Position numbers and translations under genes: made by a program. The notes below the pieces were generated by a model. It was not told the origin of the DNA. It saw nothing but the letters and a program-made list of their open reading frames with translations, and did no database searches. This document shows positions 28,950-57,439 of a stretch of DNA of 64,000 nt, piece by piece. Source of the DNA: Malacoraja senta (taxonomy: Eukaryota); contig JAXLNO010002228.1 in assembly GCA_038087875.1 (NCBI GenBank), positions 1 through 64,000 of the forward strand, in the 5' to 3' direction. The stretch's first letter is position 1, and each line of letters opens with the position of its first letter.

Positions 28950-29260
28950 GCGGCCTTGGTGGCAGCTACTGAGTGCAGCAGTAGAGTTGCTGCCTTACAG
29001 CGCTTGCAGCACCGGAGACCCGGGTTCGATCCCGACTACTGATGCTGTCTGTACAGAGTTTGTACGTTCTCCCCATGACCGCGTGTGTTTTCTCCGAGAT
29101 CTAAGGTTTCCTCCCACACTCCAAAGACGTACAGGTATGTAGGTTAATTGGCTTGGTGTGCGTGTATAGGATAGTGTTAATGTGCGGGGATCGCTGGTCA
29201 GCGCAGACTCGGTGGGCCTAAGGACCTATTTCGTCACTGTATCTCTAAATTAAACTAAAC
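28950..29260 (+). mobile_element. tRNA-derived SINE (HE1/V-SINE-like); representative of roughly 15 or more copies in both orientations
   Basis: Head agagttgctgccttacagcg...gagacccgggttcgatccc (A/B-box-like), shared body gtacgttctccccatgacc and (taaac)n tail. Other copies near 8120, 8400, 27730, 28520, 29335, 34875, 37140, 46610, 50160, 51975, 52860, 53735, 54483, 55928, 63005. Confidence 0.85.
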
Positions 29261-29901
29261 AAAACTAGTAAATGTTAAACTGCAACCAATCTGCCTCGTA
29301 GCTGACTTGGATCATGAACAGTGCGAGCCCCCAACAGAGCAGCACAGTGTCACAACTCGTAGAGCTGCTGCCTCACAGCGACACAGACCCGGGTTCAATT
29401 TTGACCTTGAGTGCCATCTATGTGGAGTTTGCATGTTCTCCGTGTAACCGCATTGGATCCCTCCAGGGGCTCCGGTTTCCTCACACATCCTAAGATGTGT
29501 CAGTTTATAGTTTAATTGGCCACTGTAAATTGCCCCTAGTGGGTGGGTGACTGGATGAGAAGGTGCAATGAGATAGAATTCATGAGAACAGGTGGTTGGT
29601 GGTTGGCATGGACACGGTGGGCCGAAAGGACTGCTTCCATGCTGTACTTTTTAATGACTCATTGATATTTCTAGGATTTGGGGCAGTGAATCCATAATGT
29701 TTAACTTTTTTTTACACTGAATTCACAATTTTTAAATATCTGATTATCAGAAACATTTAACAACAGCACAAAGGCTAGTTGACAGTGGTGACTGTCGAGG
29801 CATTTCAGGTGTAGCTGCTGCCTTATCCTACTTGAGATCGATCATTTCTTCAAGCCCAATACCTTTACTAGCAACAGTGCATCACAATTTTTCCATCTTA
29901 C

Positions 29902-30009
29902 CTCTCCTCTTTTTTCTCCACCAAACAATTACTGCCAAGACAATAGCCAGAAATATCAGCACACACACGGCAATAAGGCCTATGTGCCTGTCTTTCTTCC
30001 TATTTCCTT
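29902..30009 (-). CDS. MHC class I-like connecting peptide/transmembrane exon
   Basis: 108-bp phase 1-1 exon between cttatttttcAG and GTaaga. Translates (E)GNRKKDRHIGLIAVCVLIFLAIVLAVIVWWRKKRR: hydrophobic span plus basic stop-transfer. Same strand and correct order downstream of alpha3. Not in the ORF track in this frame. Confidence 0.85.
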
Positions 30010-31103
30010 CTGAAAAATAAGAATGCATAATTTTACAAATCAATTGTTAAGCTGTGCAGCTAAATAGATGGGCACTGTCTGAAGACTTCAGAGTGAAGAA
30101 GGGTCTCGACCAGAAATGCCACCTATTCCTTTTCTCCAGAGATGCTACCTGACCGCTGAGTTACTCCAGCATTTTATGTCTATCTTTGGGGCTTTTCAAG
30201 GTATATAAGATGATATGGTGTTTTGAATCACGGAGTTCTGCAGCATGGCAAAGGGACAATATCTGTTCTGTACAACTCTATGATCTATGGCACCATCACA
30301 GCCACAACTTAATTCAAGAAAGAAGGTGAATTGAAAGCAGAAAGCTTTAACCCTATATAAACTAACATTTGTTTTGGGGAAAATGCTGGATTCCTTTCAA
30401 TAATGGCAGAACATTTAAGTAATAACAAAACAATAAAGTGCATTATCAGGGCATTAACAGGAAAATTGTAGAAAGAAAGAGATGCAGATACTGATTTACA
30501 CAAAAGCTTTAGTTTAGTTTATTGTCACATGTATTGAGGTACAGTGAAAAGCTTTTGTTACGTGCTAACCAGTCAGTGGAAAGAATATACATGATAGACA
30601 CAAAATGCTGGAGTAACTCAAGGGAACAGGCAGCATCTCTGGCGAACATGGATCCATCACCTATTCCTTTTCTCCAGAGATGCTGGCTGACCAGCTGAGT
30701 TATTCCAGCAATTTGTGTCCATCTTCGGTGTAAACCAGCATTTGCAGTTTCTTCTTACACATGGACAGGTGACGTTTCATTTTGGGACCCTTCTTCAAAC
30801 TTTGTTTGAGAAATTGATTAGAATTCTTTGAAAATGCAACAGGAACCCGTAGACAATGTATATTCGAGCAGCAGGTGTGAAAAGCCTAAAATTCATAAAC
30901 AAAATGATGGAAAAGCAGAATAGGTAACAAAATTCAAATGAGAAACAAAAGAAATACAATATATTGTAGAGATCCAAACGTCGTGAACAAATCAATGTTT
31001 TTAAAGAAATACAGTTTTGGCCCACTCGCGTTTAGTAAGGACTTGAGCAAAGTTCCTGCCGTTGTTATCGGGCACACCAGTTGACTGGCGATTAACTCAT
31101 CAC

Positions 31104-31710
31104 TAAAGGCTCTGTCTTACCTGTTTGCGGTCATCGGCGGTGAAGCGCGGCGTCGCCGGTAGCGAGGACCGCGCGGCAACGGCAAGAGCGTCGAGCCTAT
31201 CCAACTGAGCGCCGCACGGATGTTGCGCGGGGGCCGAGTTAATTTAAACACGGCGGGTCCCACGTGCTTGCGGTAAGTAAAAAAAGGGCGGGCCGACTGC
31301 GATGACGTCGGCCCGCCGCACGTGACTCACCCGCGGCGGCTGTGGCGGCTGCCGTCCAGATCGCGGCGCTGCAGCGGTGGCTGTGCCTGCGGCCGTGCAG
31401 CACACGTGCGTCACTGGCGGCGGCACGTGCCTCACTGGCGGAGGCTGTGGCTGAGGAGGCTTGACGCACGGCGCTCGAGCCAGACTGGCGGCGGCCCGTG
31501 CGAGCGGCCGTGCGCACTCGCGCATCACTGGTGGAGGTTGTGCGGTAAGTATTTTGTTTTGGACATTGTCGTTTTTATTTTAGCACCGCGCGTTGTTGGG
31601 AACACCGACGCACGGCCCGGGAATTGTACTTTCTCACGAGTGCGCGGTCTATGGCGGCAGATTCCTCCCGTTTCGCCGCCATAGACCGCAGACTCGTGAG
31701 ACAGGCCTTT
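31104..31710. mobile_element. CpG-rich PIF/Harbinger-like MITE in the alpha3-TM intron
   Basis: Termini taaaggc(t)ctgtcttac ... gtgagacaggccttta are near-inverted and resemble the TIR of the element at 47164. TAA/TTA-type flanks. No transposase. Confidence 0.65.
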
Positions 31711-32419
31711 AACTCCCACCAAAACCCTGTCACTCACGTGATAGTCCCAGCTCCCCTGACGAGGGTTCTAGCAATAAGTGGCCTGACCACCAGATGTCGC
31801 CACAATATCTGGATTTTCATAAGATATCTGATCAAGTGATGCAAAGGCACATGGCTTATGACATTGGGGGTAATAATTAGCATGAATGGAAAAACAATTA
31901 AGAGCAAGCAGAGAGTTGTCTTAAAGGAGTGTTCAGGTTGGGAAACTGCAACTGCAGGTTGGGAATCAATGCAAGAAAGTGAACTACTTATCGTTGGTAT
32001 TAAGAGCAGATGAAGGGACTGATGGCGCTGTAGCCTAGATTGCTGATGATACATAGATAGGTGGAAAATTAAGTTCTGGAGTATGTCAACAGCCTTCAGA
32101 GTGAAACATCAGATTCCTTATTTGTGCATTGTTCGAGGGAATCTTCAAAAGTGAACATTTGTGTAGGTTAGTGCAGCATACTTGGAATCAAACTACTACG
32201 ATCGCTGTTTGTCAGGCAGTTATATTTTTTGTTGCTGAATCTGTAACTTGTGTCAGGGAACTTACTTCATTAGGTTTTGTTTTATTAATGCCAGATGTTT
32301 CAAAATACAGAGCAAAGGTTTGTTTTGTATGCTATCCAAACAAATTATAAAACTATACATAAATACAAACTCAAAAACAATAGATAGAGCAAAGAGGAGG
32401 ATACAGAGTACAGAATATA

Positions 32420-32960
32420 GTTCTCAGCATTGTAACACATCAGTTCCATGGACAATGTTCAATGTTCAATGAGGTTGAGGTGAATCGGGCATTAAACCTA
32501 CATTATGGAAGGACCCTTCCGAAGCCTGTTAACAGGTGGAAAGGGGGTGTTCCTGAGTCTGGCAGTGCATATTTTCAACTTTCTGTACCTAATGCCTGAT
32601 GGGAGCAAGAAGGAGGAAGGTTGGGATAAGTCTCGTTTTCCAAGGCAACCTAGTGTAGATTGAGCCAATAGTGGGAAGTCTGGCCTGTGTGATGATCTTT
32701 AACTCTTTGTATATTCTTGCAGTCTTGGGCAGTGCAGTTCCCAAATCAAGATGTGATGCAACCCAACAACATGCTTTCTCTAGCGGCATCTATAGATGTT
32801 TGCTGGAGTCACCAGAGACATGATGAATATTCTCAGTCTCCTGAGGAAGTAGAGGTGTCGGTGTGCCTCCTTGGCTATGTGGTCAGTCCTTTACAGAATA
32901 TTGGATAAATTCATGCCAAGGAACATGAAGCTCTCAATCATTTCCACTTCGGACCATTGA
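32420..32960 (-). mobile_element. Rex1/Babar LINE 3' fragment, degenerate
   Basis: Reverse complement parallels the 62085-62990 Rex1 fragment (cctctacttcctcaggag, ctatagatgccgctagaga). Confidence 0.6.
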
Positions 32961-33304
32961 TTCAGATTGGGGCATGTACTCCCCCAGTGCCTTGCTGTTA
33001 ATCACATCATGAGGAAAGATTCATTTTTTATTTAAACATACCTTTCATAGATTTCAGTTCCACCACTGAGAATCTCAAATACTCCTTCCTTATATATTAG
33101 TTATTTATTTACTTTTGATAAATGTTCTGTTGACAAAGTCTTCTGCTCTTGTGGAGAGTGGGTGCTGATTACGTGATTGCTTAGAGCAACACCACTAAAC
33201 AAAGAAAGTTTAAGCATCTTGGAATATGGGATGTATTCATGATGATTAAAATGGAAACAACAGAAGATAATGATTATCTATGAAAGAATATTTAACGTTC
33301 TTAC

Positions 33305-33571
33305 CCCAGATGATGGTCTTCCCACCGGGCAGGCTGCTGTGATCGACATGACAGGAATACTGTTTCCCATCATACGGATCATACTCAAGGACAGACCTTA
33401 GATGATATGTTCCATCGTTGTTGGGTATGACCCCAGAAGATTTGGTCTCAGAGACATGTTGACCATTCTGCAACCAGCTGACATTGATGGCCGGTGGGTA
33501 AAATCCAAACACAGTGCAGTACAGGACTGAATGATCATCAGGGCGGGCAGCGAGAGTGACCTCAGGGGAAA
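33305..33571 (-). CDS. MHC class I-like heavy chain, alpha3 (IgC1) exon
   Basis: 267-bp phase 1-1 exon between actgtcttgtAG and GTaag. Translates (V)SPEVTLAARPDDHSVLYCTVFGFYPPAINVSWLQNG...VIPNNDGTYHLRSVLEY...YSCHVDHSSLPGGKTIIW. Has IgC1 Cys/Trp/Cys, GFYP and the class I-type PN.DGT motif (class II beta has NGDW). Confidence 0.93.
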
Positions 33572-36500
33572 CTACAAGACAGTAAGATGGTTATTTTCAT
33601 CTTCAGTAAAACTTGCACAGTCACCCACCACAAAATATTCTTCAGTCCACTACAACAACCAAGTTACTGTCCACATCTGCCCCATTTTGCCTCTTTCGGC
33701 ACCATCAACCAACCACGTGGTTTAAAAGGGATCGCACGCTCCCTGTTAAGACAGTACACAAGAAAGTTTGAAAGTACGTACCATTAAATTCAGGAACAGC
33801 TACTTCCCCACTGTTATTGGACTACTGAATGGTTCTCATGTAAGATAAGATGTTGCCCTGATCTTCCAACCAATCTCATTGTGATCCTTGCAACTCTTTT
33901 TGATCTGCACTTTCTCTGTAACTGTAATGCTATGATATTGTAACCCGATATTCTGCACTCTGAGAATTTTTCTCTTTGCACTGTTCTACTTGTGGATGGC
34001 TTGATTGCACATGTGTAGTATGATCTGATTGGATAACACACAGACAAACTTTTGACTATATCACAGTTCATGTGACAATAATAAACTAATACCATCGGCA
34101 AATCTTTTCACTAGGGCATATTATTGACAATAATAAATAATTGACAAGTTACGAAATGAGGGTCAATTGGGGAGGGGACAAGCTTAAAATTGGCAGTATT
34201 TTCACTCCTCTTCAATAAGAGATAAAAGAGACCAGTCATTTGTTTACAAAATCTCTTTTTGCAGAGTGTGGTCATTCTCTGGCGCCAGAGATTTGTGAAG
34301 ACAAAATCATTGGAAGCATTTAATGTGGCGGTAGTTAACTTAATTAAACTTAAATTGGAGAACTGAGTGCAATGAGGAACTGATATCGAACAGGAGTTGA
34401 TGCCTGAGGAACGTCAGCCATGGTCATATTGAATGGTGGGCAGGTTAGAGGACCAAATGGCTTACTCGGAAACTTAATAACCGAGGAGAAAATCAGGCTT
34501 CTGAATGATCGTTCCATAAGCCAGGGTACTGTCCAATTGACCACTACCCCATTAAAGACAGTGGACTTTGTTTATAGAACTATGTAGGGAGGAACTGTAG
34601 ATGCTGGTTTAAACCGCAGATAGACACAAAATGCTAGAGTAACTCAACGGGTCAGGCAGCATCTCTGGAGAGAAGGAATGTGTCACGTTTCGTGTCGAAA
34701 CACTTATCTAATGGAACTGCTGTGCTACATTGCTGAGAACTACATGCCACACTCTGTACCTTCCCCTTTGCTCTACCTACAGTACTTGAGTTTGATGATC
34801 ATATATATGTATTTTGTTACCTCATCCAATTGGATAGCATGCAAAACAAAGCTTTACACTCTACCTCAGTACATGGGCAGCACAGTGGCGCAGAGGGAAA
34901 GTTGCTGCCTTACAGTACCACAGACCAAAGTTCAATCCTGACAATGGGTGCTGTCTATATAGAGTTCATACATTCTCCCTGTGACCATGTGAGTTATCTC
35001 CGGGTGCTACAGTTCCGTCACATTCAAAGACGTGCAGGTTTGTAAGTTTTTTGGCTTCTGTAAATTGTCCCTAGTGTGTAGGATAGAACTAATATTTGGG
35101 TGGTCGTTAGTCAGCACAGGTTCAGTGGGCCAAAAGGCCTATTTTCATGCTGTACCTCGAAACTAAACGTGACAATAATAAACCGAAACTTATCCCTGTG
35201 CCTATCTGTAGATTAGTGTCACTCATACTGTGGCTCCGCCCACAGGCTTATTAGACAGCTCTCTCTCTCTCTGGTAGACTGGTAGTAAGCATGCTGAGAA
35301 GAAAGCACCTTGTGTTTCCTCTGCAGAGTTACTAATAAAAGACTATGGATTCTAACCACTATGTGTGAGTTTGATCATTCTTCCAACACTATCTCTTGTG
35401 TTGTTACGTCTCTGGAACTAAGTGGTAGCTGCGCTTAACTGCTGTAGCATAACTGTTTAAGCTGAACAATTCATGAAAAAAGTCTAAAAAGGATAAAAAA
35501 CAAGTGATTCCAGCATGTTGAAAGATAATTGGGACTGATACGTAATGGGTGGCACTGCGACACAGTTCCAGTGACGAGGGTTTGATCACAATCTTGAAAC
35601 AGAAAAACTTAAACTGAGGCAGGCGCCTCTACTTCATCAATCCAGTGCTGTTATGACACTGGGCCTTAACATGAGAAAATGTGAAATTGGGTATTTCCTT
35701 AGGGCAAAATCAGACTTCTCAGAGACTTGGAAGCTGCAAGATAGTCCTGGAATGTGGTGGATCTCTGCGTGCTGTTCCAGAAGAGGACGAATTGTACTTA
35801 TGTACAGTATGACTTGACTGGGGAGAATGCAGAACAACCATTTCACTGCAGACAGACACAAAAAGCTGGAGTAACTCAGCGGGACAGGCAGCATCTCTGG
35901 AGAGAAGGGACGGGGTGTCCAGCATCTGCTGTTCCATCCAAACCATTTCACTGCATCTCTGCATGCATGAAACTAAACAGAGTTATATAAAATGCAGCAC
36001 ATACTGCAGTACTCAAGTAGGTCAGGCTGTCCTGATTTTGCAGGTGGATAACTTTACTGTAATTTTAAAAAAACACAAAAATGTGCAGGTGTAACTCAGT
36101 GGCTCAGGCAGCATCTGGAAGACATGGTTACGTAATGTTTCAGCTTGGTGTCCTTCTTCATACTTCTTGCATCTGTTCTTTCTGACTTCAACTTAACAGT
36201 TGAAAAGGACCGTCGTGAGCCCCACCACGGGGCGTGGACTTACCATCGGAGCGGATCCCTTGCCTGGGATCGCTCCCAACGCGGCCTGCGAACTTACCAT
36301 CAAGGGCTCCCAGTCTCGGGAGAGGCTAGTCGGGAGCTCCAACGCCACAGAAGGTTCGTCCAGCCCCGACGCGAGGTTCGATCGCCCGGCGCAGGGGAGC
36401 TGACAATCCCCCCGAAATGACCAGTTCTTTTATCGACAGGGAATACAACTTGTTGAACGTGGAATTGAGTGTGAAAGGCTGCAACATGTCAAGGTAGAAG

Positions 36501-37739
36501 CTGAGTTGTTGGTCCTCAAGGTTACTTTCACCCTTGTTATCCTAGTGTAAGAGGTACAGATGGATGGATCATGGTGGGTGTTGAATGGAGAATTAAAGTG
36601 GCAGGAATTAGGAATCTTAGAAAGTCCCAGGAATTAGGAATCTTAGAAAGTCCCATGGATTGAATGCGGGTTCTCCAGAACGCAGCCACTCAATTTGTTT
36701 CATTGATGCGATGTGGAAGATTACGTCATGAAAACCAAATGCAGTAGATTTGACTGGAAGTGCAAGTGTTTCACGCTGTTTCACTTTGAAGAACTGCCTG
36801 GGTCTATGGACAGTAGGAAGGGAAGAGGTAAATGGATAGATGTTGCATGCACCAAGACAGGAAAGTAGAGGAAAGTTGTGGGGATAGTAGACAGACCAGG
36901 GAGCGAAAAAGGGAATGACTACTTCAAGATATAGAATGGGGATCAGGGCAGGAGGGGGGGGGGAGAAATGGATTGACTAATTGAATCAGATTTAAACTGG
37001 GAGTAAGTATTCAACATGGAGGCTGGAGGAGTGAAAAACTCTGCCCTGTCCAATGAGAATATATAGAACATAGAACAGTACAAGAACAGGACTTTCAGCC
37101 TGCAATGTCCATGTCGAACAGGATACCAAGTTAAACTAAGGCAACACAGTGGCACAGTGATAGAATGGCTGTCTTACAGCATTAGAGACCCGGGTTCGAT
37201 CCTGACTAGAGTGCTGTCTGGACGGAGTTTGTACGTTCTCTCTGTCACCCTGTGGGTTTTCTCTGGGGGCTACGGTTTCCTCCCAAATACAAAAGACGTG
37301 CAGGTTTGTAGGTTAATTGGCTTCTGTAAATTGTCCCTAGCTTGTAGGACAAAAATAGTGAATGGGCAATTGCTGGTCAGTGCAGACTCAGTGGCCCAAA
37401 GATCCTGTTTCCATACTCTATCTCTAAACTAAACCAAAACTGATTTCCACTGCCTGCATGTGATCCATATCCTTGTATTCGCTGCACATTCACAAGCCTG
37501 TCCAAAACCTTCTTAAGCACCATTATCATGTCTTCCTCTACCACCACTCCTGGTAGCGCATTCTAGGTATCAAGCTCTCTCTGTGCAAAAAAACACTTGA
37601 CCTGCACAACTCGTGTAAATTTTGCCCTTCGAAGCTTAATGCTGTGCTCTTTTGAGATGTGTGATAGACATGCAATCCCATTAGGGGCTGTCAACTGTGG
37701 TCAAGAAAATCCATGGTTAACTAATATGAAATACATCAA

Positions 37740-38010
37740 TTACACTTTCTCCCTGTCAAACAGGGATGTAATGCTGAGGTTCTATAAGGCGCCGGTCAGG
37801 CCACATTTGGAGCATTGTGAGCAATTTTGGGCACCATATCTGAGGAAGGATGTGCTGGCTCTGGAGAGTGTCCAGAGGAGGTGTACAAGAATGATCCCAG
37901 GAATGAATGGGTTAACATATGATGACCATTTGATGGCAGTGGGCCTGTACTCGCTGGAGTTTAGAAGAATAAGGGGGGACCTCATTGAGTCATACAAAAT
38001 AGTGAAAGAC
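37740..38010 (+). mobile_element. CR1 RT 3' fragment
   Basis: YKAPVRPHLEHCEQFWAPYLRKDVLALESVQRR.TRMIPG. Confidence 0.8.
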
Positions 38011-38014
38011 TGTT

Positions 38015-39440
38015 TGCCTTTTGAAATTGGTTCGATTATGTTTGCTCCCACAAAATTGCATTAAAAAACCTATAGTGAAAATTCTATAATATATAGTGGT
38101 ATACGAATTTGGAAACAATTAAAAAAGACTTTAAAATTGGATAATTTATCACTCTGTCTCCCCATTATAAACAACCCTTTATTCAAACCCTCCATGTTGG
38201 ATAAAGGCTTTACACAATGGAAAAATTAAGGAATTAAAAAGATGGGACATCTTTATAGGAAAGGCACTTTTCTTTAATTTCAGGGGTTACAACAGATTTA
38301 CGGACCACACTCAAATAACTTTTTCAGATATTTACAAATTAGAGATTACATTAAATCAAATACACAAGATTACAGAACTAGGGAACCAGAAATCCTTGAT
38401 GAATGTTTGAATAAACATCCTAATAACATCAACAGGGGGCGCCGTCGAATATGGCTGCCCCGCCAGCAGCTGTTAGTTTTTTCACTCTTTTTTTAATTTT
38501 TAGTTAGTTGAGAGTGTTGGTTGGAGATCTTTTAGTCTTTTTATGTGGGGGGGGGGTAGGGGGAAGGGGGAAACTATTCTTCTCAGTCCCTACCTGGTCG
38601 GAGATGCGGCTTTTCTCCGAGCCGTATCTTCGCCCCTTCCTCGCGGCCTACGGGCAGGCTGGAGCGGCGTTTTCCTGCCGGGACCGGCCAGGACTTCAGC
38701 TTCGGCGGCGGCACAGCGCTGAAGCACCATCGCGGAGTGGGCGATGCCTAACCCGGGTCGCCGTGCAGTAAGCTCCGGAGTGCTGTGACGGCCGGCACTA
38801 ACATCGCAGAGCTGCGGTCTGCGGTCAGTGGAGCTTCCAGCGGCGCTGAGCTTGGAACACCGCGGAGCCTGGGATCTGACGACGAGGTCGACAGAGTCGG
38901 GGCATCGACCAGCGCGGCTCGTGGACTTCGGGAGCCGCGGTCTACTGGGAGGAGGCAGCCGCTCCAGACACTCCGGGCCGCTGAGAGTGTTCACCCGACG
39001 CTGGAGCTTCATCATCCGGTGAGAGGGCCTGAGGCATCGGGCTGCCGTAGCGGCGACTGCAGAGGCCTCAATAGGCCCCGACTATGGGTGAACTGGGGAT
39101 GGGACTGGACTTTGCTGCCTTCGCCCACAGTGGGAACCATTGTGGGGGGATGTTTTTATGTTTACTGTTAAATTCTTTGTTGTAATCTTTATTTGTGTGC
39201 TGCATGGCAAGTCAAATTCCTATCAACTCAGTTGACATGGCAATAAACTTCTTGAATCTTGAATCTTGAATCTTAATACAGAAAAATTAATATCTCATAT
39301 TTATAATACCCTCTTAGATAGTGAGGTCCCGCCGACGGATTTATATAGACACACATGGGAAAATGAATTAGGCCAACCCATAACGAAAGATATTTGGGAC
39401 GAAAGTCTACAATATATACATCAATGCTCGTTAAATGCCA
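38015..39440 (+). mobile_element. L1 ORF2 fragment of the same family as 14081-20563, split by an insertion at ~38429-39272
   Basis: DCLPFEIGSIMFAPTKL, NNPLFKPSMLDKGFTQW, then NTEKLISHIYNTLLDSEVPPTDLYRHTWENEL. All are close matches to the 14430-15560 translation. Confidence 0.85.
38429..39272 (+). mobile_element. Non-autonomous retroelement with GC-rich head and (TTGAATC)n tail
   Basis: Interrupts the L1 fragment with a taata(a)ca duplication. 3' module gccttc..cacagtg...ggatgttt...caataaa is shared with 24574, 40735 and 43800. Confidence 0.7.
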
Positions 39441-39444
39441 GACA

Positions 39445-39630
39445 TGCCTGTTTGCTGGCATGCGTCTTCCACCCATGGAAGACTTGACCCAGGATGGCCA
39501 TTCAAGACGATGTTGAAGACGTTGATGGAAGACGCATGTGTAGAGACAAAAGAGGAGCTTGCCAGCTGCATGGAGGACAGAGATGTGTGGTGCGTCCATC
39601 ACCGTGCCCGTTGGAAACCAGCACGGCACT
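39445..39630 (+). mobile_element. Probable RTE-clade LINE 3' end fragment
   Basis: TLMEDACVETKEELASCMEDRDVW resembles RTE ORF C-termini. Confidence 0.5.
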
Positions 39631-39789
39631 AATGTTTTCAACGATTATTATTATCATCCACTACACCCCTCTGTCCTGGGGATTTATCCACATTTCTCTT
39701 CAAGTGATCCAACATCTCCTTCTTACTTAACTTCAAAGTGTCCCTGCATGTTAGCATTCTCCACATTGATTCTCCATGTGTAAGAAAGA

Positions 39790-40580
39790 ACTGCAGATGC
39801 TGCAGATGTTAAAATCGTAGAGAGACACAAAATGCTGGGGTAACTCAGCGGGTCAGGCAGCTTCCCTGGAGAGATGGAATGGGCATTGTTTTGGGTCGAG
39901 ACCCTTCTTCAGACTGATGTCAGGGGAGGGACAAAGATAGAATGTCGGCGGAGACAGTAAGACTGGTGGCAGAATTGGGAAGGGGGAGGGGATGGAGAGA
40001 GAAATCAAGGGCTATCGAAAGTTATAGAAGTCAATGTTCATACCGCTGGAGTATAGACTACCCAAGCGAAATATGGGGTGCTGTTCCTCCAATTTGGGCT
40101 GGGCCTCACTCTGACAATGGAGGAGGCCCAGGACAGAAAGGTCAGATTGGGAATGGGAGGGGGAGTTGAAGTGCTGAGCCACCGGGAGATCGGGTAGGGT
40201 AAGACGGACTGAGGGGAAGTGTTCAGCAAAACGATCGTCGAGCCTGCGCTTGGTCTCACTGATGTAGAGAAGTTGACAACTGAAACAGCGGATACAGTAG
40301 ATGAGGTTGGAAGAGGTGCAAGTGAACTTCTGCCTCACCTGGAAAGACTTTAGGTCCTTGGACGGAGTCGAGGGGGGACGTAAAGGGACAGGTGTTGCAT
40401 CTCCTGCGGTTGCAGGGGAAAGTATCCGGAGAGCAGGTGGTTTGGGTGTGAAGGGACGAGTTGACCAGGGAGTTTCGGAGGGAACGGTCTCTGCGGAAAG
40501 CAGAAAGGGGTGGAGATGGGAAGATGTGACCAGTAGTGGGATCCCGTTGGAGGTGGCAAAAATGTTGGAGGATTTTATGA
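39790..40580 (-). mobile_element. Penelope-like element 3' fragment (GIY-YIG endonuclease + terminal repeat)
   Basis: FTCTSSNLIYCIRC..CQLLYISETKRRL.DRFAEH...LPVAQHFN..H...EEQH.IFRLG. Confidence 0.88.
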
Positions 40581-41606
40581 TGTACTTACTATTAATGGTC
40601 CTTACTATTCTACATGTCTTCCTTGGTGAAACCAAACCTCGCCTATATCCACAAACTCCAAGCACATATTCCCTTCTATATCCTTAAGCAATCCAACTTT
40701 TGCTGCAATGGTTGCCTCGCCAACAGTATGTCTGTCCCTTCCTTCCTTGTGTCTGTTTTGTACGTGTTAAATGTATATTCTTTAGTGTTCTTTAGCTTGT
40801 TTTGGGGGTGGGGGTTGGGGGAGTTGTGGGAAACTTTTCCTAATCTCTTACCTCGACGTAGATGTGATATTTTCTGTATCGTATCTCCGTCCACAATGCA
40901 GCCTAACATTGAGGAATGGTGGCCTTTGCTAGAGATCGACCGGGAGATCCATCGCAGGAGCCTGTGGACTTACCATCATGGAGCTCGCAATCCCTGTCGG
41001 GGATCGACTTTAGGGCTCCAACTGTGAGAGCCTGCAAGACTTTAACATCGCGGAGCCCGCGGTCCCCGGTCGAGACCAACATCCGGGACCTCCAAGCCGC
41101 AGGAGTTTCGACCGCTCCGACCGCTCCGACGCGGGAGTTTCGATTCCCCAATGGGGGTTTCGACCACCGACTGCAGATTGTTTGACTGCCCCGACCGTGG
41201 GAGATAAAGAGGAAGGAGATTAGACTTTATTGCCTTCTATCACAGTGAGGAACGTGCGGGCTCCTCTGTTGTGGATGTTTATGTTAACTTTTACGTTATT
41301 GTGTGTCTTGTTGCTTTCTTTTTGTATGGTGTATGGTAGTCTGCATTTCAGTGTACCTTAATTGGTATATGTGACAATAAACTAACCATGAAACCTTGAA
41401 AAAGATGTGGGATTTTCTGTAATCCGACTCACTAAAGCCACTTTGTGGCCTTTATTAGCCCCTTTAGTTTTAAGCTTTAGAGCAGTGGTTCTTAATCTTT
41501 TTGGCCCCACGACCCCATCAGGCATTCTTGATCAGTACCGTGACCTCTAAAACAAAATTTGAAAAAAAACAGCCCAATTTATTAAAACATGTCTGCCAAT
41601 GCTCAG

Positions 41607-43359
<1,753 letters not shown>

Positions 43360-44164
43360 GGTTCACAACACACACTGTTTGTGCGTGTATACGCAGGGCC
43401 TCACAGGAATTTTATCAGTGGGTACAAAGTTTCTTTTGGGCCCCCTTCCCTTCTCCATTAGTCATCCTGTTTTTATCCACTATGCTACAGTTTTATGCCA
43501 TGAGCTGTAGCCTGCACGGCAAAAAGGGGTATGGAAGATGAGAGAGGGGTGGGATGGGGCGCTCTGTTGATTTTCTGCATTTGAGGCCTTATGTCCCTAT
43601 ACACCCTCCATGATAAATATAAATAAATATAAATAACATAAAAGGATCATCAAGCACATTTGTTTTCCTTCACTCTATAGATGCTGCCTCACCCATTGAG
43701 TTTCTCCAGCATTTTATCTACCTTTGTTTTGAACATCTTTGTTTATGCTACAATACAGATAAGGAGAAAGAATTCACATTGAAACATCCTTTTATATTTA
43801 ACCGCAAAACCGCTGGCCTGTGGCCTATAACATCCTGAAGCTGCGGTCTCCAGTAGGAAAGTGCCGAGTCGGGACCTCCAAGCCGCAGAGTGTGTTTGTC
43901 CGTCCCAACGTCGGAGTTTGGATCATCCCGACGAGAGGGCCTTGTACATCGGGCCGTCCCTAGCGGCGACTACGGAGGGGTTATGGCCCCGAACACGGGT
44001 GAACAATGGAGGACTTGCTGAAACTTGTTGCCTTCCACCACAGTGAAGAATGCTGTAGTGGATGTTTGTGTTCAATTTTATTGTGTATTGTGTGTTCTTT
44101 TTACATGTATCACTGCTGGCAAATTCACTTCACTGCACCTTCGGGTGTATGTGATGAATAAAAC

Positions 44165-44400
44165 TGACTTTGAATACTTAGCCTGGCCAAATCCACAAGA
44201 CGTTCATGAGACATTGTCGACCTTAAATAATTCTTAATCAGCTTGAGTTTGCTAAATGACCTCTCTGCAGAAGCTACTGTTGCTGGAATTGTTAATAGTA
44301 TTCTGAAGCTAACACAAACATTTGGAAACAGGTTACCAAGTCAATAGTCTGTTAACAAGTTCAACAGATCTAATGGTTTTAACTTCATTTATAAAATTCA
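44165..44400 (-). pseudogene. hAT transposase C-terminal dimerisation domain remnant (ZMYM1/Ac-like)
   Basis: Manual translation: KPLDLLNLLTDY*LGNLFPNVCVSFRILLTIPATVASAERSFSKLKLIKNYLRSTMSHERLVDLARLSIQS. Not in the ORF track. Confidence 0.85.
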
Positions 44401-44444
44401 CCCTCCCACTAACACACACATACACTCAGACACACACTCACTCA

Positions 44445-44830
44445 NNNNNNNNNNNNNNNNNNNNNNNNNNNNNNNNNNNNNNNNNNNNNNNNNNNNNNNN
44501 NNNNNNNNNNNNNNNNNNNNNNNNNNNNNNNNNNNNNNNNNNNNNNNNNNNNNNNNNNNNNNNNNNNNNNNNNNNNNNNNNNNNNNNNNNNNNNNNNNNN
44601 NNNNNNNNNNNNNNNNNNNNNNNNNNNNNNNNNNNNNNNNNNNNNNNNNNNNNNNNNNNNNNNNNNNNNNNNNNNNNNNNNNNNNNNNNNNNNNNNNNNN
44701 NNNNNNNNNNNNNNNNNNNNNNNNNNNNNNNNNNNNNNNNNNNNNNNNNNNNNNNNNNNNNNNNNNNNNNNNNNNNNNNNNNNNNNNNNNNNNNNNNNNN
44801 NNNNNNNNNNNNNNNNNNNNNNNNNNNNNT
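44445..44830. other. Assembly gap flanked on both sides by CA-rich microsatellite
   Basis: N run between acacacactcactca and actcacacacaccc. Confidence 1.
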
Positions 44831-45218
44831 ACTCACACACACCCACACACACACACACACACACACCCACCCACCCACACTTACCCACACCCACTGACCT
44901 ACACCCCCACCCACACAAATCCACCCACTTACCCACGCCCACTCTCCCACACACCCACCCCCACCCCCACCCCCACCCAAACGCAGGCCCGGACCACTGA
45001 AACAGCCGTGGCTGCCGACTCTCACCACCTCCCCGGGCGGGGACACCACAGCCACTGTCGCTGGAAAGCCCATATCTCTACTCCAGCTCCCCACAGGCCT
45101 CCGCCAGCGACTCCGCCGACACTTGCCTCTCCACCGGCCACCAGCGGGCCAGAGCCGTCACCTTCCCGGTTCAGCACCAGGCCCACAACCTCCACCATGC
45201 AGGCAGCACGTGGTCTAA

Positions 45219-46165
45219 CTCTGCTGGCTCCTAGTCCCCCTCCCCCTACAGGGAAGATCAATCAGTAGTGATGACTCTGCTGGCTCCTAGTCCCCCTCCC
45301 CCTGCAGGGAAGATCAATCAGTAGTGATGACTCTGCTGGGTCCTAGTGCTCCCCCCCCTATAGGGCAGATCCATCGGTCAGCTGGGTCCTAGTCCCCCTC
45401 CCCCTACAGGGAAGATCAATCAGTAGTGATGACTGCTGGGTCCTAGTGCTCTCCCCCCCTATAGGGCAGATCCATCGGTCAGCTGGGTCCTAGTCCCCCT
45501 CCCCCTACAGGGAAGATCAATCAGTAGTGATGACTGCTGGGTCCTAGTGCTCCCCCCCCCCTATAGGGCAGATCCATCGGTCAGTTGGGTCCTAGTCCCC
45601 CTCCCCCTACAGGGAAGATCAATCAGTAGTGATGACTCTGCTGGGTCCTAGTGCTCCCCCCCCTATAGGGCAGATCCATCGGTCAGCTGGGTCCTAGTGC
45701 TCTCCTCCTGCAGGGAAGATCAATCAGTAGTGATGACTCTGCTGGGTCCTAGTGCTCCCCCCACCCCACTATAGGGCAGATCCATCGGTCAGTTGGGTCC
45801 TAGTGCTCTCCCTCCCCCTGCAGGGAAGATCAATCAGTAGTGATGACTCTGCTGGGTCCTAGTGCTTCCCCCCCCTATAGGGCAGATCCATCGGTCAGCT
45901 GGGTCCTAGTGCTCTCCTCCTGCAGGGAAGATCAATCAGTAGTGATGACTCTGCTGGGTCCTAGTGCTCCCCCCCCCCTATAGGGCAGATCCATCGGTCA
46001 GTTGGGTCCTAGTGCCCTCCTCCTGCAGGGAGATCCATCAGTAGTGATGACTCTGTTGGGTCCTAGTGCTCTCCCTCCTCCTGCAGGAAGATCCATCAGT
46101 AGTGATGACTCTGTTGGGACCTAGTGCTCTCCCTCCTCCTACAGGGAAGATCCATCAGTAGTGAT
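45219..46165. repeat. Minisatellite, about 18 units of 50-56 bp, with A/B alternation (about 103-bp higher-order repeat)
   Basis: Unit A ctgggtcctagt...cctacagggaagatcaatcagtagtgatga; unit B ctgggtcctagtgctccccccctatagggcagatccatcggtcag. Order approximately AA(BA)7AA. Confidence 0.92.
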
Positions 46166-47163
46166 AGGTCTTCCCCTTCCCTCTCTTTTAATGAGGTTAC
46201 CCCGACCACACACCACCAGTTAAAATTCCCTGCTTTATTATGGATCACAATTTCTACGAATTACAATATATAAAACTCCGAAGGCACAAAATGTGAATGC
46301 TAGTATTCACAAAATATATGCAAACATTTTCTGAGATTTCAGGAAATTCCCACCCCCCCTCCTTCAGCTCCCGGGCTCCTATTGGACTCTGGGCCCGCAT
46401 ACGATGTACGCCCTGCACCCCCCTCTCATAGGCCCTGTGTATACGTAAGCGCATTCGTGAACAAAATATTGTGTGTGGTATGTACCTTTGTTAGGTTCCT
46501 AAAAATAGGCTCAACAAATTGATGTTCTTTACAACCCCTTCATGACCCCCGGAAAAACCCCAAACGACCCCCATGGGGGTCACGACCCCCAGGTTAAGAA
46601 CCACTGCTTTGGAGATACAGTGCTGAAACAGGCCCTTCAGCCCACACTAGGGACAATTTACAATTATACCAAGCCAATTTACCTACATCTCAGAGAAAAG
46701 CCACACAGGTTACGGGGAGAACATGCAAACTCCGTACAGTCACCACTCGTAGTCAGGTTCAAACCCGGGTCTCTGGTGCTGCAAGGCAGCAACTCGTGTA
46801 AGGCCACGATCTCTTGGCTTTGCTTATAGTTATTATCATGTTTTATCTTCTATTGTGTTCTTTTTGCTTATTGCATATAAACAAATATAAAGCTGCACAT
46901 AAGGTTGGATCTTTTCGAGGCCCGAGCTGCCCCATCTTTTACCACAAAAGTGCTTCCTATATTTAGAGAAACATAGATATAATAAGGCTCACCCCTCATG
47001 GGCATTGAAGGCTTTCTCTAAAATATGGAGACCATTAAGCTGTTCACTGCCAAGTTTATTTTTCACTATTGGCCATGACCCCTAGTGTACTCGGCAGTGG
47101 CATTGAACAGGTTAAAGATATCCAGTGATGTGTAGCTGCGCTACCTTTCCTTGGTATTCTTAA

Positions 47164-47842
47164 GGGCCTGTCCCACTTACGTGTCCTTGGCACACAAATT
47201 ATGCGACCTTGTGGTCGCGTTGAGGCGCACGGGCATCGTATGGCCGCGCGGGGCCGGTCCCACTTGGAAGCGCGGAGGGGTATGGAGTTGTGCGCGACAT
47301 CGCGCGGGGCTCCAATAATTTTGTAGTGAACGAAATCTTCGCGCGCCAACGGCCTGTCGCGGAACTGATGGCCAAAGTGGGACAGGCCCAAGACCCTGGC
47401 GCGACGCAAAGTCTCACTTTCAACAGGAGCAGAAGCAGGCGAACGATCGCCGAACTCGGCCTGGGGCTCACAGCCGTTGCAGTCCGGATCCGCCCCCACT
47501 TCTACTCCCAGAGCGGGGCCAAGAAAATTGAAGATAGACACGAAATGCAGGAGTAACTCAGCGGGACCGGCAGCATCTCTGGAGAGAAGCAATGGGTGAT
47601 GTTTCGGGTCAAGACCCTTCTTTTCAGACTGAAGAAGAGTCTCGACATGAAACGTCACCCATTGCTTCTCTCCAGAGATGCTGCCGGTCCCACTGGCTTA
47701 CTCCAGCTTTGTGTCCATCTTCAAATAACGTCACGCGCTCCAGACGGCTGTGCGTACGCATGTAATCGCACCCGACCTTCGCCGGACCATCGTGGCTCAA
47801 CGCGTAATTTGCATTCCAAGGACACGAAAGTGGGACAGGCCC
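47164..47842. mobile_element. CpG-rich PIF/Harbinger-like MITE
   Basis: About 42-bp TIR gggcctgtcccacttacgtgtccttgg... / ...ccaaggacacgaaagtgggacaggccc. taa on the left flank. No ORF. Confidence 0.8.
47528..47724. repeat. Palindromic head-to-head pair of Penelope-terminal-repeat-derived elements inside the MITE
   Basis: ttgaagatagacac...ttcagactgaag...gtgtccatcttcaa: the two halves are reverse complements centred near 47626. Confidence 0.85.
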
Positions 47843-48330
47843 CTTTACTTAGATGATTCATTCCCTCTGGCATTGATTGATGAATCAAAGTGGGGGGGGG
47901 GGGGGTGATGGAATTTGTAAGGATTTGCTGAAGTCAGTTTGCTTAAAACTGCTCACTCCTTGAAAAGGAGAGTCTGTGAACTTTAGCCCAGAGACAAAGA
48001 ACAGTTTGTGAACTCAAGGTTGTAATTGATAAAAATCTAGGCACAACTGTGAACACCAACCCTTTATTAGGATGAATGTAATGAGCTAATGCCAACCATG
48101 CCCCTGGGACCAGGAGTAATAAGGAAGGGTCAAAACTTGGATGATGTTTTCATACCAATAAGAAACTCTACAAACAATGATAGCTGAATAAAACATAATT
48201 ATGTTGTATAGATGAAGAGCCTCCTTTTCAAGCTGCTTTCTGCAGTCTTTTAGTTGTTCTGCAGATCCTTTACATTCTCTCGTCTTCGTGTTTTCAAGAA
48301 ACACCACCAATAGCCGAATGTATACTAATT

Positions 48331-50100
48331 ATAGAAACATAGAAAAATAGGCACAGGAGCAGGCCATTCGGCCATTCGAGCCAGCACCGCCATTCAATAT
48401 GATCATGCCTGCATCTAGAATCAGTACCCCATTCCTGCTTTTAGAAACATAGAAACACAGAAAATAGGTGCAGGAGCAAGCCATTCGGCCCTTCGAGCCT
48501 GCACCGCCATTCAATATGATCATGGCTGATCATCCAACTCAGTATCCTGTACCTGCCTTCTCTCCATACCCCCTGATCCCTTTAGCCACAGGGCCACATC
48601 TAACTCCCTCTTAAATATAGCCAATGAACTGGCCTCAACTACATTCTGTGGCAGAGAATTCCAGAGATTCAGCACTCTCTGTGTAAAAAATGTTTTTCTC
48701 ATCTCAGTCCTAAAAGATTTCCCCTTTATCCTTAAACTGTGACCCCTTGTTCTCGACTTCCCCAACATCGGGAACAATCTTCCTGCATCTAGCCTGTCCA
48801 ACCCCTTAAGAATTTTGTAAGTTTCTATAAGAACCCCCCTCAATCTTCTAAATTCTAGCGAATACAAGCAGAGTGTATCCAGTCTTTCTTCATATGAAAG
48901 TCCTGACATCCCAGGAATCAGTCTGGTGAACCTTCTCTGTACTCCCTCTATGGCAACAATGTCCTTCCTCAGATTAGGAGACCAAAACTGTAGGCAATAC
49001 TCCAGGTGTGGTCTCACCAAGACCCTGAACAACTGCAGAAGAACCTCCCTGCTCCTATACTCAAATCCTTTTGCTATGAATGTTAACATACGATTCGCTT
49101 TCTTCACTGCCTGCTGCACCTGCATGCCTACTTTCAATGACTGGTGTACCATGACACCCAGGTCTCGTTGCATCTCCCCTTTTCCTAATCGGCCACCATT
49201 CAGGTAATAGTCTACTTTCCTGTTTTTGCCACCAAAGTGGATAACCACACATTTATCCACATTATACTGCACCTGCCATGCATTTGCCCATTCACCTGGC
49301 CTATCCAAGTCACCTTGCAGCCTCCTAGCACCCTCCTCACAGCTAACACTGCCCCCCAGCTTCGTGTCATCCGCAAACTTGGAGATGTTGCATTCAATTC
49401 CCTCGTCCAAATCATTAATATATATTGTAAATAGCTGGGGTCCCAGCACTGAGCCTTGAGGTACCCCACTAGTCACTGCCTGCCATTCTAAAAAGGACCC
49501 GTTTACTCCTACTCTTTGCTTCCTGTCTGCCAGCAAGTTCTCTATCCACATCAATACTGAACCCCCAATACCATGTGCTTTAAGTTTGTATACTAATCAC
49601 TTATGTTGGATCTTGTCGAAAGCCTTCTGAAAGTCCAGATATAACACATCCACTGGTTCTGCCTTATCCACTCTACTAGTTACATCCTCGAAAAATTCTA
49701 TAAGATTCGTCAGACATGATTTACCTTTCATAAATCTATGCTGACTTTGTCCAATGATTTCACCATTTTCCTAATGTGCTGCTATCCCATCTTTAATAAC
49801 TGACTCTAGCAGGTTCCCCACTTCTCTCTCCCTCCCTTTTCAAAAAGTGTGGTTACATTAGCTACCCTCCAATCCTCAGGAACTACTCCAGAATCTAAAA
49901 AGTTTTGAAAAATTATCACTAATGCATCCACTATTTCTGGGGCTACTTCCTTAAGTACTCTGGGATGCACTCTATCTGGCCCTGGGGATTTATCGGCCTT
50001 TAATCCATTCAATTTACCTAACACCACTTCCCGGCTAACCTGGATTTCACTCAATTCCTCCATCTCATTTGACCCCCGGTCCCCTGCTCTTTCCGGCAGT
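48331..50100 (-). mobile_element. 5'-truncated CR1 LINE (RT C-terminal half open 48520-49554) with a second CR1 3' tail in tandem
   Basis: SGVPQGSVLGP, KFADDTKL, LVRPHLEYC. (tttctatg)n-type tail. Duplicate tail at 48331-48440. Confidence 0.93.
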
Positions 50101-50419
50101 TAATTAAGTCTTCCTTAGTGAAGACAGAACTTCAATGCCACAAATCCACCTATTTGCAGCGGTGGCTTAATCTACTAATTCAGCACATTTTGGTATGTGG
50201 GAGGAAACTGGAGAACAAACATTGTCACAGGGAGAATGCTTATACTCCACACAGACTGCACTGGAGATGATTGAACCCGATCACTGGAGCTGTGAGACAG
50301 CAGCGCTCTTTGCTATAAAGCAGTCATAGAGAGAGTCACACAGCAGGGAAACAAGCCCTTTGGCCCAACTTGTCCATGCTAATCAAGATACCCGATTTAA
50401 GCTAGTCCCATTTACCCTG

Positions 50420-50930
50420 CAATGGGTAGACATCATTCAAAACGTTTCTCTCTAGATGTCAGCTGCTCTACATCGGTGAGACCAAGCGCAGGCTTGGCGA
50501 TCGCCTCGCCCAACACCTCCGCTCAGTTCGCAACAACCAACCTGATCTCCCGGTGGATCAGCACTTCAACTCCCCCCTCCCATTCCAAATCCGACCTTTC
50601 TGCCCTCGGCCTCCTCCATGGCCAGAGTGAGGACCACCGTAAATTGGAGGAGCAGCACCTCATATTTCGCTTGGGCAGTTTACACCCCAACGGTATGAAC
50701 ATTGACTTCTTTAATTTCAGGTAGTCCTTACTTTCTCCTCCCCTACTCAGCTCTCCCTCAGCCCACTGGCTCCACCTTTTCCTTTCTTCTTCCTGCGCCC
50801 CACTCCCCCCCTCCCACCCACCCTCACATCAGTCTGAAGAAGGGTTTTCGGCCCGAAACGTTGCCTATTTCCTTCGCTCCATAGATGCTGCCTCAACCGC
50901 TGAGTTTCTCCAGCACTTTTATCTACCTAT
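50420..50930 (+). mobile_element. Penelope-like element 3' end with hammerhead-like terminal motif
   Basis: GIY-YIG C-terminal remnant (HRKLEEQHLIFRLGSLHPNGMNIDF), pyrimidine tract, then ctgaagaagggttttcggcccgaaacgtt. Confidence 0.85.
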
Positions 50931-53097
50931 GCATGTCCCTGTCCATGTGTCTTTTAAATATTGTTATTGTACCTGCCGCAACTCCATTCTCTGGCAGGTC
51001 ATTCCATATGCTGACCACTCTCTGAGCACAAAGTTTGCCCCCAAGTTCCAATTAAATCTTCCCCCTCTCACATTCAACCCATGTCCTCTGGTTATTTGAT
51101 TCCCCTTCTCTGGGTAAAAGGCTCTGGGCATACATCTATCAATTCCCCTCATGATTTTAAGCACCACTATATGATCACCCTTTCAGCCTCCTGTGCTCCA
51201 TGGAATAAAGCCCTGGCTTGCCCAATCTCTCCCTCTTGTTCACACCCTTGAGCCCCGACAATATGCTCATAAATCTCATAAACATAACAATGTTGCAGAT
51301 AATATGTGCACCATAAATAATGCAAATTAAAAAAATATTTTTGAAGGCAATATGATTCAATAAACATGGTTCAATGAATCAGATGATAATGTAATAAACG
51401 TCATTCACATGTATTCACATATAATTTGAAAATAATAATAAATATTGCAAGATGTGGAAAATTGATAGAAATTATGCCCAGTGCATAATATTTTGATGTA
51501 TTGTTCCCTGTTTGTACCCTCACCCTGTTTTAGTCCAGTTAAAGATTAATAATATAATTTGTTTAATGTGTAACCGAAGAGGTAACAAAAAGCAATGTTT
51601 TCAGAAATAATTAATCATGAATGAATGACACTTTATAGTGACATGTGACAAGTCACAGTGAAAGTCTTTGTTTTGTAAACCCAACGTATTTCAAGATTCT
51701 TCACATAAAGGGCACCGACAAAGTTATAAAGTCTCCCACACCAGGTCCTCCTTTGTCCCCCCCCCCCCCCCCCCACCCACCTCACCATGGTTCCCCCACG
51801 CCTGGTCCTGCTTTGTTCAATGGTACACTACGAATGTCATTGAATTAACACAGTAATGGTGATAGGACTTATTGATTTACAATATAAAACATGTCCAATT
51901 GCAACTTATATGGATATACAAGTGTGGTGCAGATGGATTTGGACAGCTTACTTTACAATTGGTGCCCAAGATAATTTAGAGATATAGCACGAAAACAGCC
52001 CTTAGAGTCCACAGTGACCAGTGATCCCCTTTGGCATACAGGCTTGGAGTGTGGGAGGAAACCGGGGAACCCGGGGAAATCCCACGCAGGTCACGGGGAG
52101 TACGTACAAACTCTGTACAGACAGCACCTGAGGCCAGGATCAACCCTGGGTCAATAGCACTATGGCACCATCACTACGGCTGAACCACAATGACATTTAG
52201 GTTATCCTTTAAATATTTCACACAACTTTTCATTCTAAATTTGTCAATAAAAGTAAAAACAATTGGTGAGGTACGCAAGGGATTTTAACCATTCAAAAAG
52301 CCACCAACATTTCAATGATTTGTAAAATGCTGGAAGCACAGCATTTTACAAATCATTGAAATATTGGTTACCTATGGAACCTATGGAAAGAGATACAAAA
52401 TTAATGCTTCAGAATTGTGAGAATGTGTAAGTTACAGACAGGAGTGGGAGGCATGGTTGGACATAGGGAGTATCACTGATAAGGTAATTACAGGTTTCCA
52501 TGGTGATAAACTGACAATGAAGCCATCAGACAATGGCATTTTTGGTTTTTATTTCACATTTGCAGCATCTGCAGTTCTTAGGTTAGTGACTCAGCATGGA
52601 AATGGGCCATTCTGCCCACCAATTCCATGCCAACCATCGATCATCTTTCACACTAGTTCTATGTTATCCCAAAATGGACACAAAATGCTGGAGTAAGTCA
52701 GGGGAAACACTCTGTCTGAGGAAGGGTCTTGACCTGAAAAGTCATCCATTCCTTGTATCCAGAGATGCTGCCTGTCCCGCTGAGTTACTCCAGCACATTG
52801 TGCCTATCTTTGCTGTAAACCAGCATCTTCAGTTCCTTCCTACACATCTATGTAATCCCTCTTTCCTCACCCATTCTCAGCACACAAGAGTAATTTACAG
52901 AGCCCAATTAACCTACAAACTCTCACATTTTCAAGATATGGGACGGAACCGGAGAACCTGGAGGAAATATCTGTGTTCACAGGGAGAACGTGTAGTCAGG
53001 ATCAAACCTGGGTCTCTGGCACAGCGAGAAATTTCTTTGAGATGTTTTTTTATGAACATTCATCACACTCCAAATGTATTGAAATGAATGAACTAAC

Positions 53098-53358
53098 TTG
53101 CTGTTTCGTTCTGCCTCCGCATCCATTCATCGACTTGCCCTTTGATGATTCCATGGAAACCAGTTTCAGAGACCGTATTTGTTACCCAGTAATTCCTGTC
53201 AAATGCAGCCGCCATCCATTTCTGTCTTGGAACTGTAATGACCATGTTTTTGTCATAATACTGTATCTCACAACCATCCAGTTCACCCACGACACTATAT
53301 TCTGGTAGATGAGTACTCCCGTGGTTCAGGGTGTAGTAGTAGATCAGTGTGTGAGGCC
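53098..53358 (-). CDS. MHC class I-like heavy chain, alpha1-domain exon (nonclassical-looking; lineage not assigned)
   Basis: 261-bp phase 1-1 exon between ctttgtgtctAG and GTtagt. Translates GPHTLIYYYTLNHGSTHLPEYSVVGELDGCEIQYYD...VPRQKWMAAAFDRNYW...WMRRQNETA, matching the class I alpha1 pattern (HTL.Y.YT, PE..VG.LDG..I.YYD, PRQ.WM, YW, N86 glycosylation sequon NET). Confidence 0.93.
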
Positions 53359-57131: not shown

Positions 57132-57439
57132 GACACAATCTATAGCCCTCATTATTTCACTCCTGCATTCTAGTGAGAATAAATGCAGCCTATCCAATCT
57201 CTTCACATAACACCAGACCTCTATTCCAGGCAACAACCTGGCAAAACCCTTCTGCACTATTTTTGATGCCATCACATCCTTTTTAGTTTAGAGATACATT
57301 GCAGAAACAGGCCCTTCGGCCCACGCCAACCAGTGATCCCCGCACAGTAATGTTAGTAGTGGAGCGATCAGAACTCTACACAATACTCCATGTGCAGCCT
57401 AACCAATGTTTTGTTTGATTTCTCAACTCATATACTTGA

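Follow-up and report, generated by a model that had tools for sequence, protein, structure and literature searches.

The window analysed here, 64,000 nucleotides (nt) of the skate Malacoraja senta (positions 1 to 64,000 of contig JAXLNO010002228.1, assembly GCA_038087875.1), carries on its minus strand a class I gene of the major histocompatibility complex (MHC) that retains its alpha1, alpha3, transmembrane (TM) and cytoplasmic-tail exons and has no alpha2 exon. Its sequence places the gene in a conserved lineage of non-classical, CD1-like MHC class I genes of elasmobranchs, of which it is one copy. We found that the loss of alpha2 is derived and that it maps to a 1.4-kb replacement inside the alpha1-alpha3 intron. 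Taken together, the results make it probable that the copy is a young pseudogene or null copy of this lineage, from which alpha2 was removed by deletion.

Exons retained and the exon that is missing

A reading of the window made from the sequence alone (the sequence-only reading) had described three open phase 1-1 exons with canonical splice sites. All three were recovered with the same boundaries, phases and AG/GT sites (Table 1), but the gene extends further than had been proposed, to a last coding exon that starts in phase 1, ends at a stop codon and lies 21.9 kb downstream of the TM exon. The position of this stop is the same as in the orthologues of Amblyraja radiata and Rhinoraja longicauda. 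AG acceptors are present on all four exons and GT donors on the three exons needing one; the alpha1 donor (CAA followed by gttagt) and the alpha3 acceptor are the sites used by the orthologues. The direct alpha1-alpha3 join stays in frame, as had been claimed, reading ...NETA-I-SPEVTL... with the Ile codon made of A and TT. This frame is automatic, since all exons are in phase 1, and does not point to design.

Exhaustive phmmer searches with the alpha1 translation returned class I heavy chains, with a full-length class I protein of Leucoraja erinacea (XP_055521884; 86% identity, E 4.9e-44) as the best match and sawshark proteins next at 63-64%. Alpha1 also aligned to residues 3-86 of 9ch4_A in the PDB (E 6e-37) and was placed in MHC_I clusters of a protein language-model atlas (feature score 0.96); the Pfam MHC_I model was silent on the alpha1 half-domain alone. 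Alpha3 matched Pfam C1-set (3e-20) and residues 182-268 of 9ch4_A (E 8e-35), and its other best PDB matches were the alpha3 domains of MR1, CD1 and classical class I molecules, in agreement with its earlier assignment as an immunoglobulin (Ig) domain of the class I alpha3 type. No part of the window corresponds to residues 87-181 of 9ch4_A, its alpha2 domain. Of the parts of a class I heavy chain, the window thus encodes alpha1 and a C1-set alpha3 followed by TM and cytoplasmic tail, and it lacks the alpha2 domain that bears the Cys pair and forms the groove together with alpha1.

The absence of alpha2, which the sequence-only reading had claimed for the alpha1-alpha3 interval, held in every search of the whole window. 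Four full-length relatives used as tblastn queries found alpha1, alpha3 and TM (E 1e-14 to 1e-52), no alpha2, and nothing else below E 0.1. A profile hidden Markov model (HMM) of 19 alpha2 domains of the family, run unfiltered against all 2,658 stop-to-stop pieces from the six frames (minimum length 15 amino acids), reached at best E 1.8 (6.4 bits). When alpha2-bearing DNA from three species was used as the blastn query (word size 7), the only matches were to dispersed repeats. At 1148-1306, tblastn gave a weak alpha2 match (E 0.13) that contains a stop; with the family HMM it scored 6 bits and E 2.4, and it was rejected as noise. Neither an alpha2 exon nor a remnant of one is therefore present in the window, whether in the translation of any frame or in the DNA itself.

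Table 1. Features of the window and of the orthologous skate loci (each locus in its own numbering)
Feature	Sequence	Positions	Strand	Details
Alpha1 exon	window	53358-53098	minus	261 nt, phase 1-1, open, AG/GT intact
Lineage-specific hAT element	window	41481-46608		5.1 kb, in the alpha1-alpha3 intron; holds gap 44445-44829
Upstream intron flank	window	39469-39777	minus	matches L. erinacea 53681-53990, A. radiata 52558-52963, Rhinoraja 29341-29465
Replacement block	window	39468-38008		1,461 bp in place of alpha2 and 1.14 kb of its flanks
TE-X dispersed repeat, second half	window	39270-39445		82% identical to window 15106-14931
Element nested in TE-X	window	38426-39269		844 bp; heptamer-repeat tail; ~9-bp target duplication; 68% match to A. 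radiata 23250-23940
TE-X dispersed repeat, first half	window	38006-38425		79% identical to window 15516-15098
Downstream intron flank	window	36414-38007	minus	matches L. erinacea 55413-56941 (87.6%), A. radiata 64753-66227, Rhinoraja 30569-31250
Alpha3 exon (C1-set Ig)	window	33571-33305	minus	267 nt, phase 1-1, open, AG/GT intact
Connecting peptide/TM exon	window	30009-29902	minus	108 nt, phase 1-1, open
Last coding exon	window	7983-7943	minus	D-YQNIQPKQNVHC-stop; YQNI tail; acceptor cctcag before AT
Orthologous locus	A. radiata	alpha1 41881-42141; alpha2 53460-53738; alpha3 74156-74422
Orthologous locus	L. erinacea	alpha1 28186; alpha2 54471-54749; alpha3 64492
Orthologous locus	R. longicauda	alpha1 25056; alpha2 29625-29903; alpha3 32724

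Three further observations concern the 3′ part of the gene. The distance from the TM exon to the last exon is 6.8 kb in A. radiata, and it is longer here because of a ~17-kb AT-rich insertion block (~9.1-26.5 kb) that includes a second gap (18622-18754). The Tyr-x-x-Ile motif of the tail reads YQNI in the window and in A. radiata, and YQTI in Rhinoraja. Finally, in two NCBI models (XP_055486429 of L. erinacea and XP_078272227 of Rhinoraja) the alpha3 donor is read through to a stop ~19 codons into the intron, and the identical read-through peptide, GKNVKYSFIDNHYLLLFPF, is encoded in the window intron after alpha3 (33303-33249). This read-through may represent a soluble isoform that is conserved and arises by intron retention, or an annotation artefact shared by the models.

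Replacement of alpha2 in the orthologous locus

We compared the window with the orthologous loci of A. radiata (XP_032898133), L. erinacea (XP_055486429, XP_055521885) and R. longicauda (XP_078272153), all three of which have three ectodomain exons, alpha2 included. The window is colinear with each of them over ~60 kb, from upstream of alpha1 to past the last exon and into the 3′ flank. Unique intron sequence is ~89-91% identical to Amblyraja and Leucoraja and ~80-87% identical to Rhinoraja; the window is thus nearer to the first two, and Rhinoraja was therefore used as the outgroup. The alpha1, alpha3, TM and YQNI-tail exons share 92-97% of their DNA sequence with the skate orthologues and ~55-63% of their protein sequence with sharks. 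Ungapped nucleotide identities of alpha1 are 94.3% (A. radiata), 92.3% (L. erinacea) and 93.1% (Rhinoraja), and those of alpha3 are 96.3%, 95.5% and 97.4%, respectively.

Alpha2 is equally present beyond these loci, and the proposed check of orthologue structure in other skates and rays found it in every one examined. A search with the A. radiata protein gave 17 cluster representatives at 55-94% identity, all with MHC_I and C1-set domains, from Leucoraja, Amblyraja and Rhinoraja skates, from sawfish, manta and stingray, and from seven sharks (~320-350 amino acids, or longer fusions). Transcript-derived 334-amino-acid proteins of L. erinacea contain alpha2, as do all of the at least 10 paralogues, more than 90% mutually identical, that lie on one chromosome of R. 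longicauda. The alignment of 19 domains shows alpha2 to be extremely conserved, more so than any other part of the family. Relatives are named 'F10 alpha chain-like' or 'MR1-like' by NCBI. The lineage name UGA comes from a review (PMC12562908) that cites a personal communication, and this gene is a putative member of the UFA/UGA lineage of Flajnik and colleagues; its established kinship is to 9ch4_A and to the skate orthologues. This CD1-like lineage has been described as having one or few copies in sharks and rays, but it seems to be amplified in Rhinoraja and in this skate.

The colinearity is broken exactly where alpha2 should lie. Read in the orientation of the gene, homology to all three relatives ends at window position 39469 (...CCATGGGTGG). 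For L. erinacea and Rhinoraja it begins again at 38007-38010 (TCTTTCAC...), and for A. radiata at 37952, a point at which that locus has a transposable-element insertion of its own. In the relatives, alpha2 lies 480-500 bp past the first breakpoint and ~665 bp before the second, which in the window falls inside an old fragment of a long interspersed nuclear element (LINE). The lost segment measures 1,422 bp in L. erinacea (53991-55412) and has no homology in the window; its conservation is 95-97% in A. radiata and 88.5% in Rhinoraja.

An 8-bp direct repeat (GCAAACAG, gene orientation) bounds the block found in its place, which consists of a dispersed repeat, TE-X, split into two halves by a nested element, with 13 extra bases at the upstream end of the block. 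A second TE-X copy, at window 14931-15516, is uninterrupted at the point where the nested element sits. A. radiata carries an insertion block of its own, ~5.9 kb long (53831-59755), that starts ~90 bp downstream of alpha2 and includes an element 65-82% similar to the repeat that took the place of alpha2 in the window. Insertions seem to be drawn to the short stretch that follows alpha2.

The one gap between alpha1 and alpha3 does not account for the missing exon. It had been argued that this gap lies within a hAT element bounded by terminal inverted repeats and a target-site duplication, has CA-rich sequence on both sides and is unlikely to hide an exon, and each of these points was borne out. 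The hAT termini are 18-nt inverted repeats (94% complementary) flanked by an 8-bp target-site duplication, CTTTAGAG/CTTTGGAG; pieces of a transposase-like open reading frame (ORF) lie at 41607-42903, the DNA on both sides of the gap is CA-rich and of low complexity, and no reading frame crosses it. Rhinoraja has an intact empty site for this element at ~29119-29127 of its locus, with contiguous flanks, and the gap lies ~5 kb upstream, in gene orientation, of the syntenic place of alpha2. The gap cannot hold the ancestral exon, because it is inside a hAT whose site is empty in Rhinoraja and because the place of alpha2 is elsewhere.

Among other repeats in the region, a young LINE contributes a 344-amino-acid reverse-transcriptase ORF at 48520-49554 (minus strand; also listed at 59841-60990). 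The window and the loci of A. radiata and L. erinacea contain several copies of it, 92-95% identical, which dates activity of the family to around the time these skates split or later.

Age of the loss and competing interpretations

Among the possibilities raised by the sequence-only reading, a pseudogene deleted for alpha2 is the one favoured by our results, with alpha2 present in the three orthologues and the 17 relatives and its loss mapped to the replacement block. The lesion is of the disabling kind that marks a pseudogene, since a whole domain exon is gone. We infer that the lineage of this skate lost ~1.4 kb of intron together with the entire alpha2 exon, that a transposon copy took their place, and that this copy later received the nested insertion. 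The transposon may have inserted before the deletion occurred, or a break may have been patched with ectopic transposon DNA. The other exons and splice sites would have remained untouched because the event is young relative to skate divergence. If the copy is transcribed, the alpha1 donor would most simply be joined to the alpha3 acceptor, giving an alpha1-alpha3-TM-YQNI chain. Such a chain is predicted to form only half a ligand groove, to have no alpha2 disulphide and to miss much of the platform for beta2-microglobulin (beta2m), and on this prediction we read the locus as a young pseudogene or null copy, presumably non-functional, in an amplified gene family.

Several observations weigh against this interpretation. 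There is no second lesion: the four exons contain no stops, frameshifts or broken splice sites. The leader exon, which lies 31.8 kb upstream of alpha1 in A. radiata, falls beyond the window, which stops 10.6 kb upstream of alpha1. The target duplication of the nested element already differs at one base, and the event is therefore not brand new. For alpha1 plus alpha3, the pairwise ratio of nonsynonymous to synonymous substitution rates (dN/dS) amounts to 0.40 with A. radiata and to 0.31 with L. erinacea, although nearly all of the divergence behind these values predates or lies outside the branch leading to the window.

The dN/dS check proposed earlier could be carried out in this pairwise form, but the branch of the window is too short to tell selection from neutrality. 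With Rhinoraja as outgroup, alpha1 and alpha3 together acquired two synonymous changes and V25E on that branch, the TM segment S-to-F and the tail N-to-K. Window-specific changes number ~6 nt in 670 coding nt. With so few window-specific changes, purifying selection and neutrality are indistinguishable; the small number is compatible with a recent loss, without being proof of it. A count of 10 synonymous to 12 nonsynonymous changes on the window branch, obtained with three taxa, was discarded as misleading, since the Rhinoraja outgroup places most of these changes on the stem of Amblyraja and Leucoraja.

It is unlikely, in our estimate, that the locus encodes a functional, genomically fixed two-domain class I chain (alpha1-alpha3-TM-YQNI), kept and perhaps amplified after a single deletion. 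If it did, expressed chains would act without a classical groove, for example as HLA-G2-like, beta2m-free homodimers travelling via endosomes, or as a receptor ligand or decoy. The intact exons and splice sites and the in-frame join are what such a chain would require, but the join, as noted above, follows automatically from the phase-1 exons. The TM segment and YQNI tail are conserved, and the filler is old enough to have received a nested insertion. The architecture itself is derived, being absent from the three other skates and from all sharks and rays sampled, and the changes on the window branch are too few to show constraint. The idea of a genomically encoded two-domain chain, possibly one pairing in the manner of class II, accordingly finds no support as an ancestral or designed architecture, as the relatives all carry alpha2.

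Transcript data gave this chain no help. We found no RNA run of this species, and the sole RNA contig on alpha3, from run X17 ('organism H'), runs upstream into an AG-ending, alpha2-like exon. Contigs of this run end exactly at the alpha3 donor (33305), and those at the alpha3 acceptor continue into AG and then 28 unaligned bases. The alpha2 exon ends in ...AAAAG and the alpha1 exon in ...GCAA; because AG precedes alpha3, the X17 transcript most likely carries alpha2 before alpha3. Residue 58 is Lys in X17, in organisms B and D, in A. radiata and in L. erinacea, and Arg in the window. X17 therefore comes from another species or from a paralogue, and it says nothing direct about the window copy.

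Reads from an organism designated A, probably of the same species as the window, bear on the number of copies. Two runs of this organism contain 0.77-0.79 of the window's words, introns included, and their exact-match contigs cover unique intron pieces on both sides of the replacement. Word depth on unique intronic contigs is 1,300-3,900 (run X1), versus ~9-12 in the runs of other organisms, which suggests either many near-identical copies of the locus or an unusual (targeted or very deep) library. Minor variant contigs occur at depths of 20-170, and a synonymous alpha3 variant at 33444 accounts for 23% of the depth. This variant, together with the very high depth, fits the several near-identical copies that an amplified two-domain chain would leave, but near-identity of the copies would make their open frames a sign of youth and not of selection. 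Nothing we found positively supports a functional alpha1-alpha3 chain, which we regard as improbable; an accidental product is conceivable.

Slightly less probable still is a null allele, in which case the deletion would be a polymorphic haplotype and other chromosomes of the species would carry a functional form of the locus with alpha2. The very young appearance of the exons agrees with it, and the incomplete share of the window's words in the organism A contigs means that individuals or copies differ. However, nothing shows an alpha2-bearing allele of the same copy, and the nested insertion with its diverged target duplication suggests some age.

An assembly artefact, in which alpha2 was dropped by collapse or misjoin or sits inside the gap, is very improbable. 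The region is repeat-rich, the scaffold has gaps and no contig was shown to bridge the junction at 38007, where repeat-derived contigs dominate (33260-39250). Both breakpoints, however, are free of gaps and ~5 kb distant from the gap, and the sequence on either side of the block belongs to the same orthologous locus, in the right order, with exact-match organism A contigs on its unique pieces. The filler has limits of its own, with a copy of the direct repeat at either end, and contains a nested element that has a target duplication. The gap belongs to a hAT whose empty site is contiguous in Rhinoraja, away from the syntenic position of alpha2.

Comparison with known systems

With the CD1-like lineage to which PDB 9CH4 is related, the window gene shares its orthologous position, its colinear introns and its conserved alpha1, alpha3, TM and tail exons. 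It differs in being without alpha2, the very part that the family conserves best.

Mammalian MHC regions contain truncated class I pseudogenes and gene fragments. The present copy resembles them as a duplicated class I gene disabled by exon loss in a repeat-rich, birth-and-death family, whereas its lesion is single and clean and its other exons are all open.

Two ectodomains are the ancestral architecture of W-category (WA/WB) and class II chains (PMC8713811), which, like the product predicted here, combine one membrane-distal domain with one C1-set Ig domain and a TM segment. In the window, however, the two-domain state is the outcome of a recent deletion, and the orthologues have three ectodomain exons. 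The window pairs a class I alpha3 Ig domain (GFYP and DGTY motifs) with an alpha1-type domain, which neither WA nor WB does. The same paper (PMC8713811) sets out as features an alpha-chain Ig domain of the beta2m/class II alpha2 type with a characteristic Trp, and class II-type TM glycines. By these the gene is neither of W-category nor of class II type, having Gly and not Trp in the DGTY motif and a TM segment without the class II glycine pattern. Identity as a W-category alpha chain was ruled out by the type of the Ig domain and by the structure of the orthologues.

A parallel in domain order is provided by HLA-G2 and HLA-G6, in which, as in the product predicted here, alpha3 follows alpha1 in frame and a TM segment may be present or absent; HLA-G2 binds LILRB2 as a homodimer free of beta2m (PMC11756389). 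Those isoforms arise by alternative splicing, with exon 3 kept in the gene, whereas in the skate the exon is gone from the DNA and the chain is a predicted one. A single locus of this kind matters little in itself, being an exon-deleted copy of a class I lineage known to specialists. The clean, in-frame, exon-sized loss would nonetheless provide a natural test of whether a class I chain of alpha1 and alpha3 can be produced and tolerated in a setting other than the splice isoforms of HLA-G.

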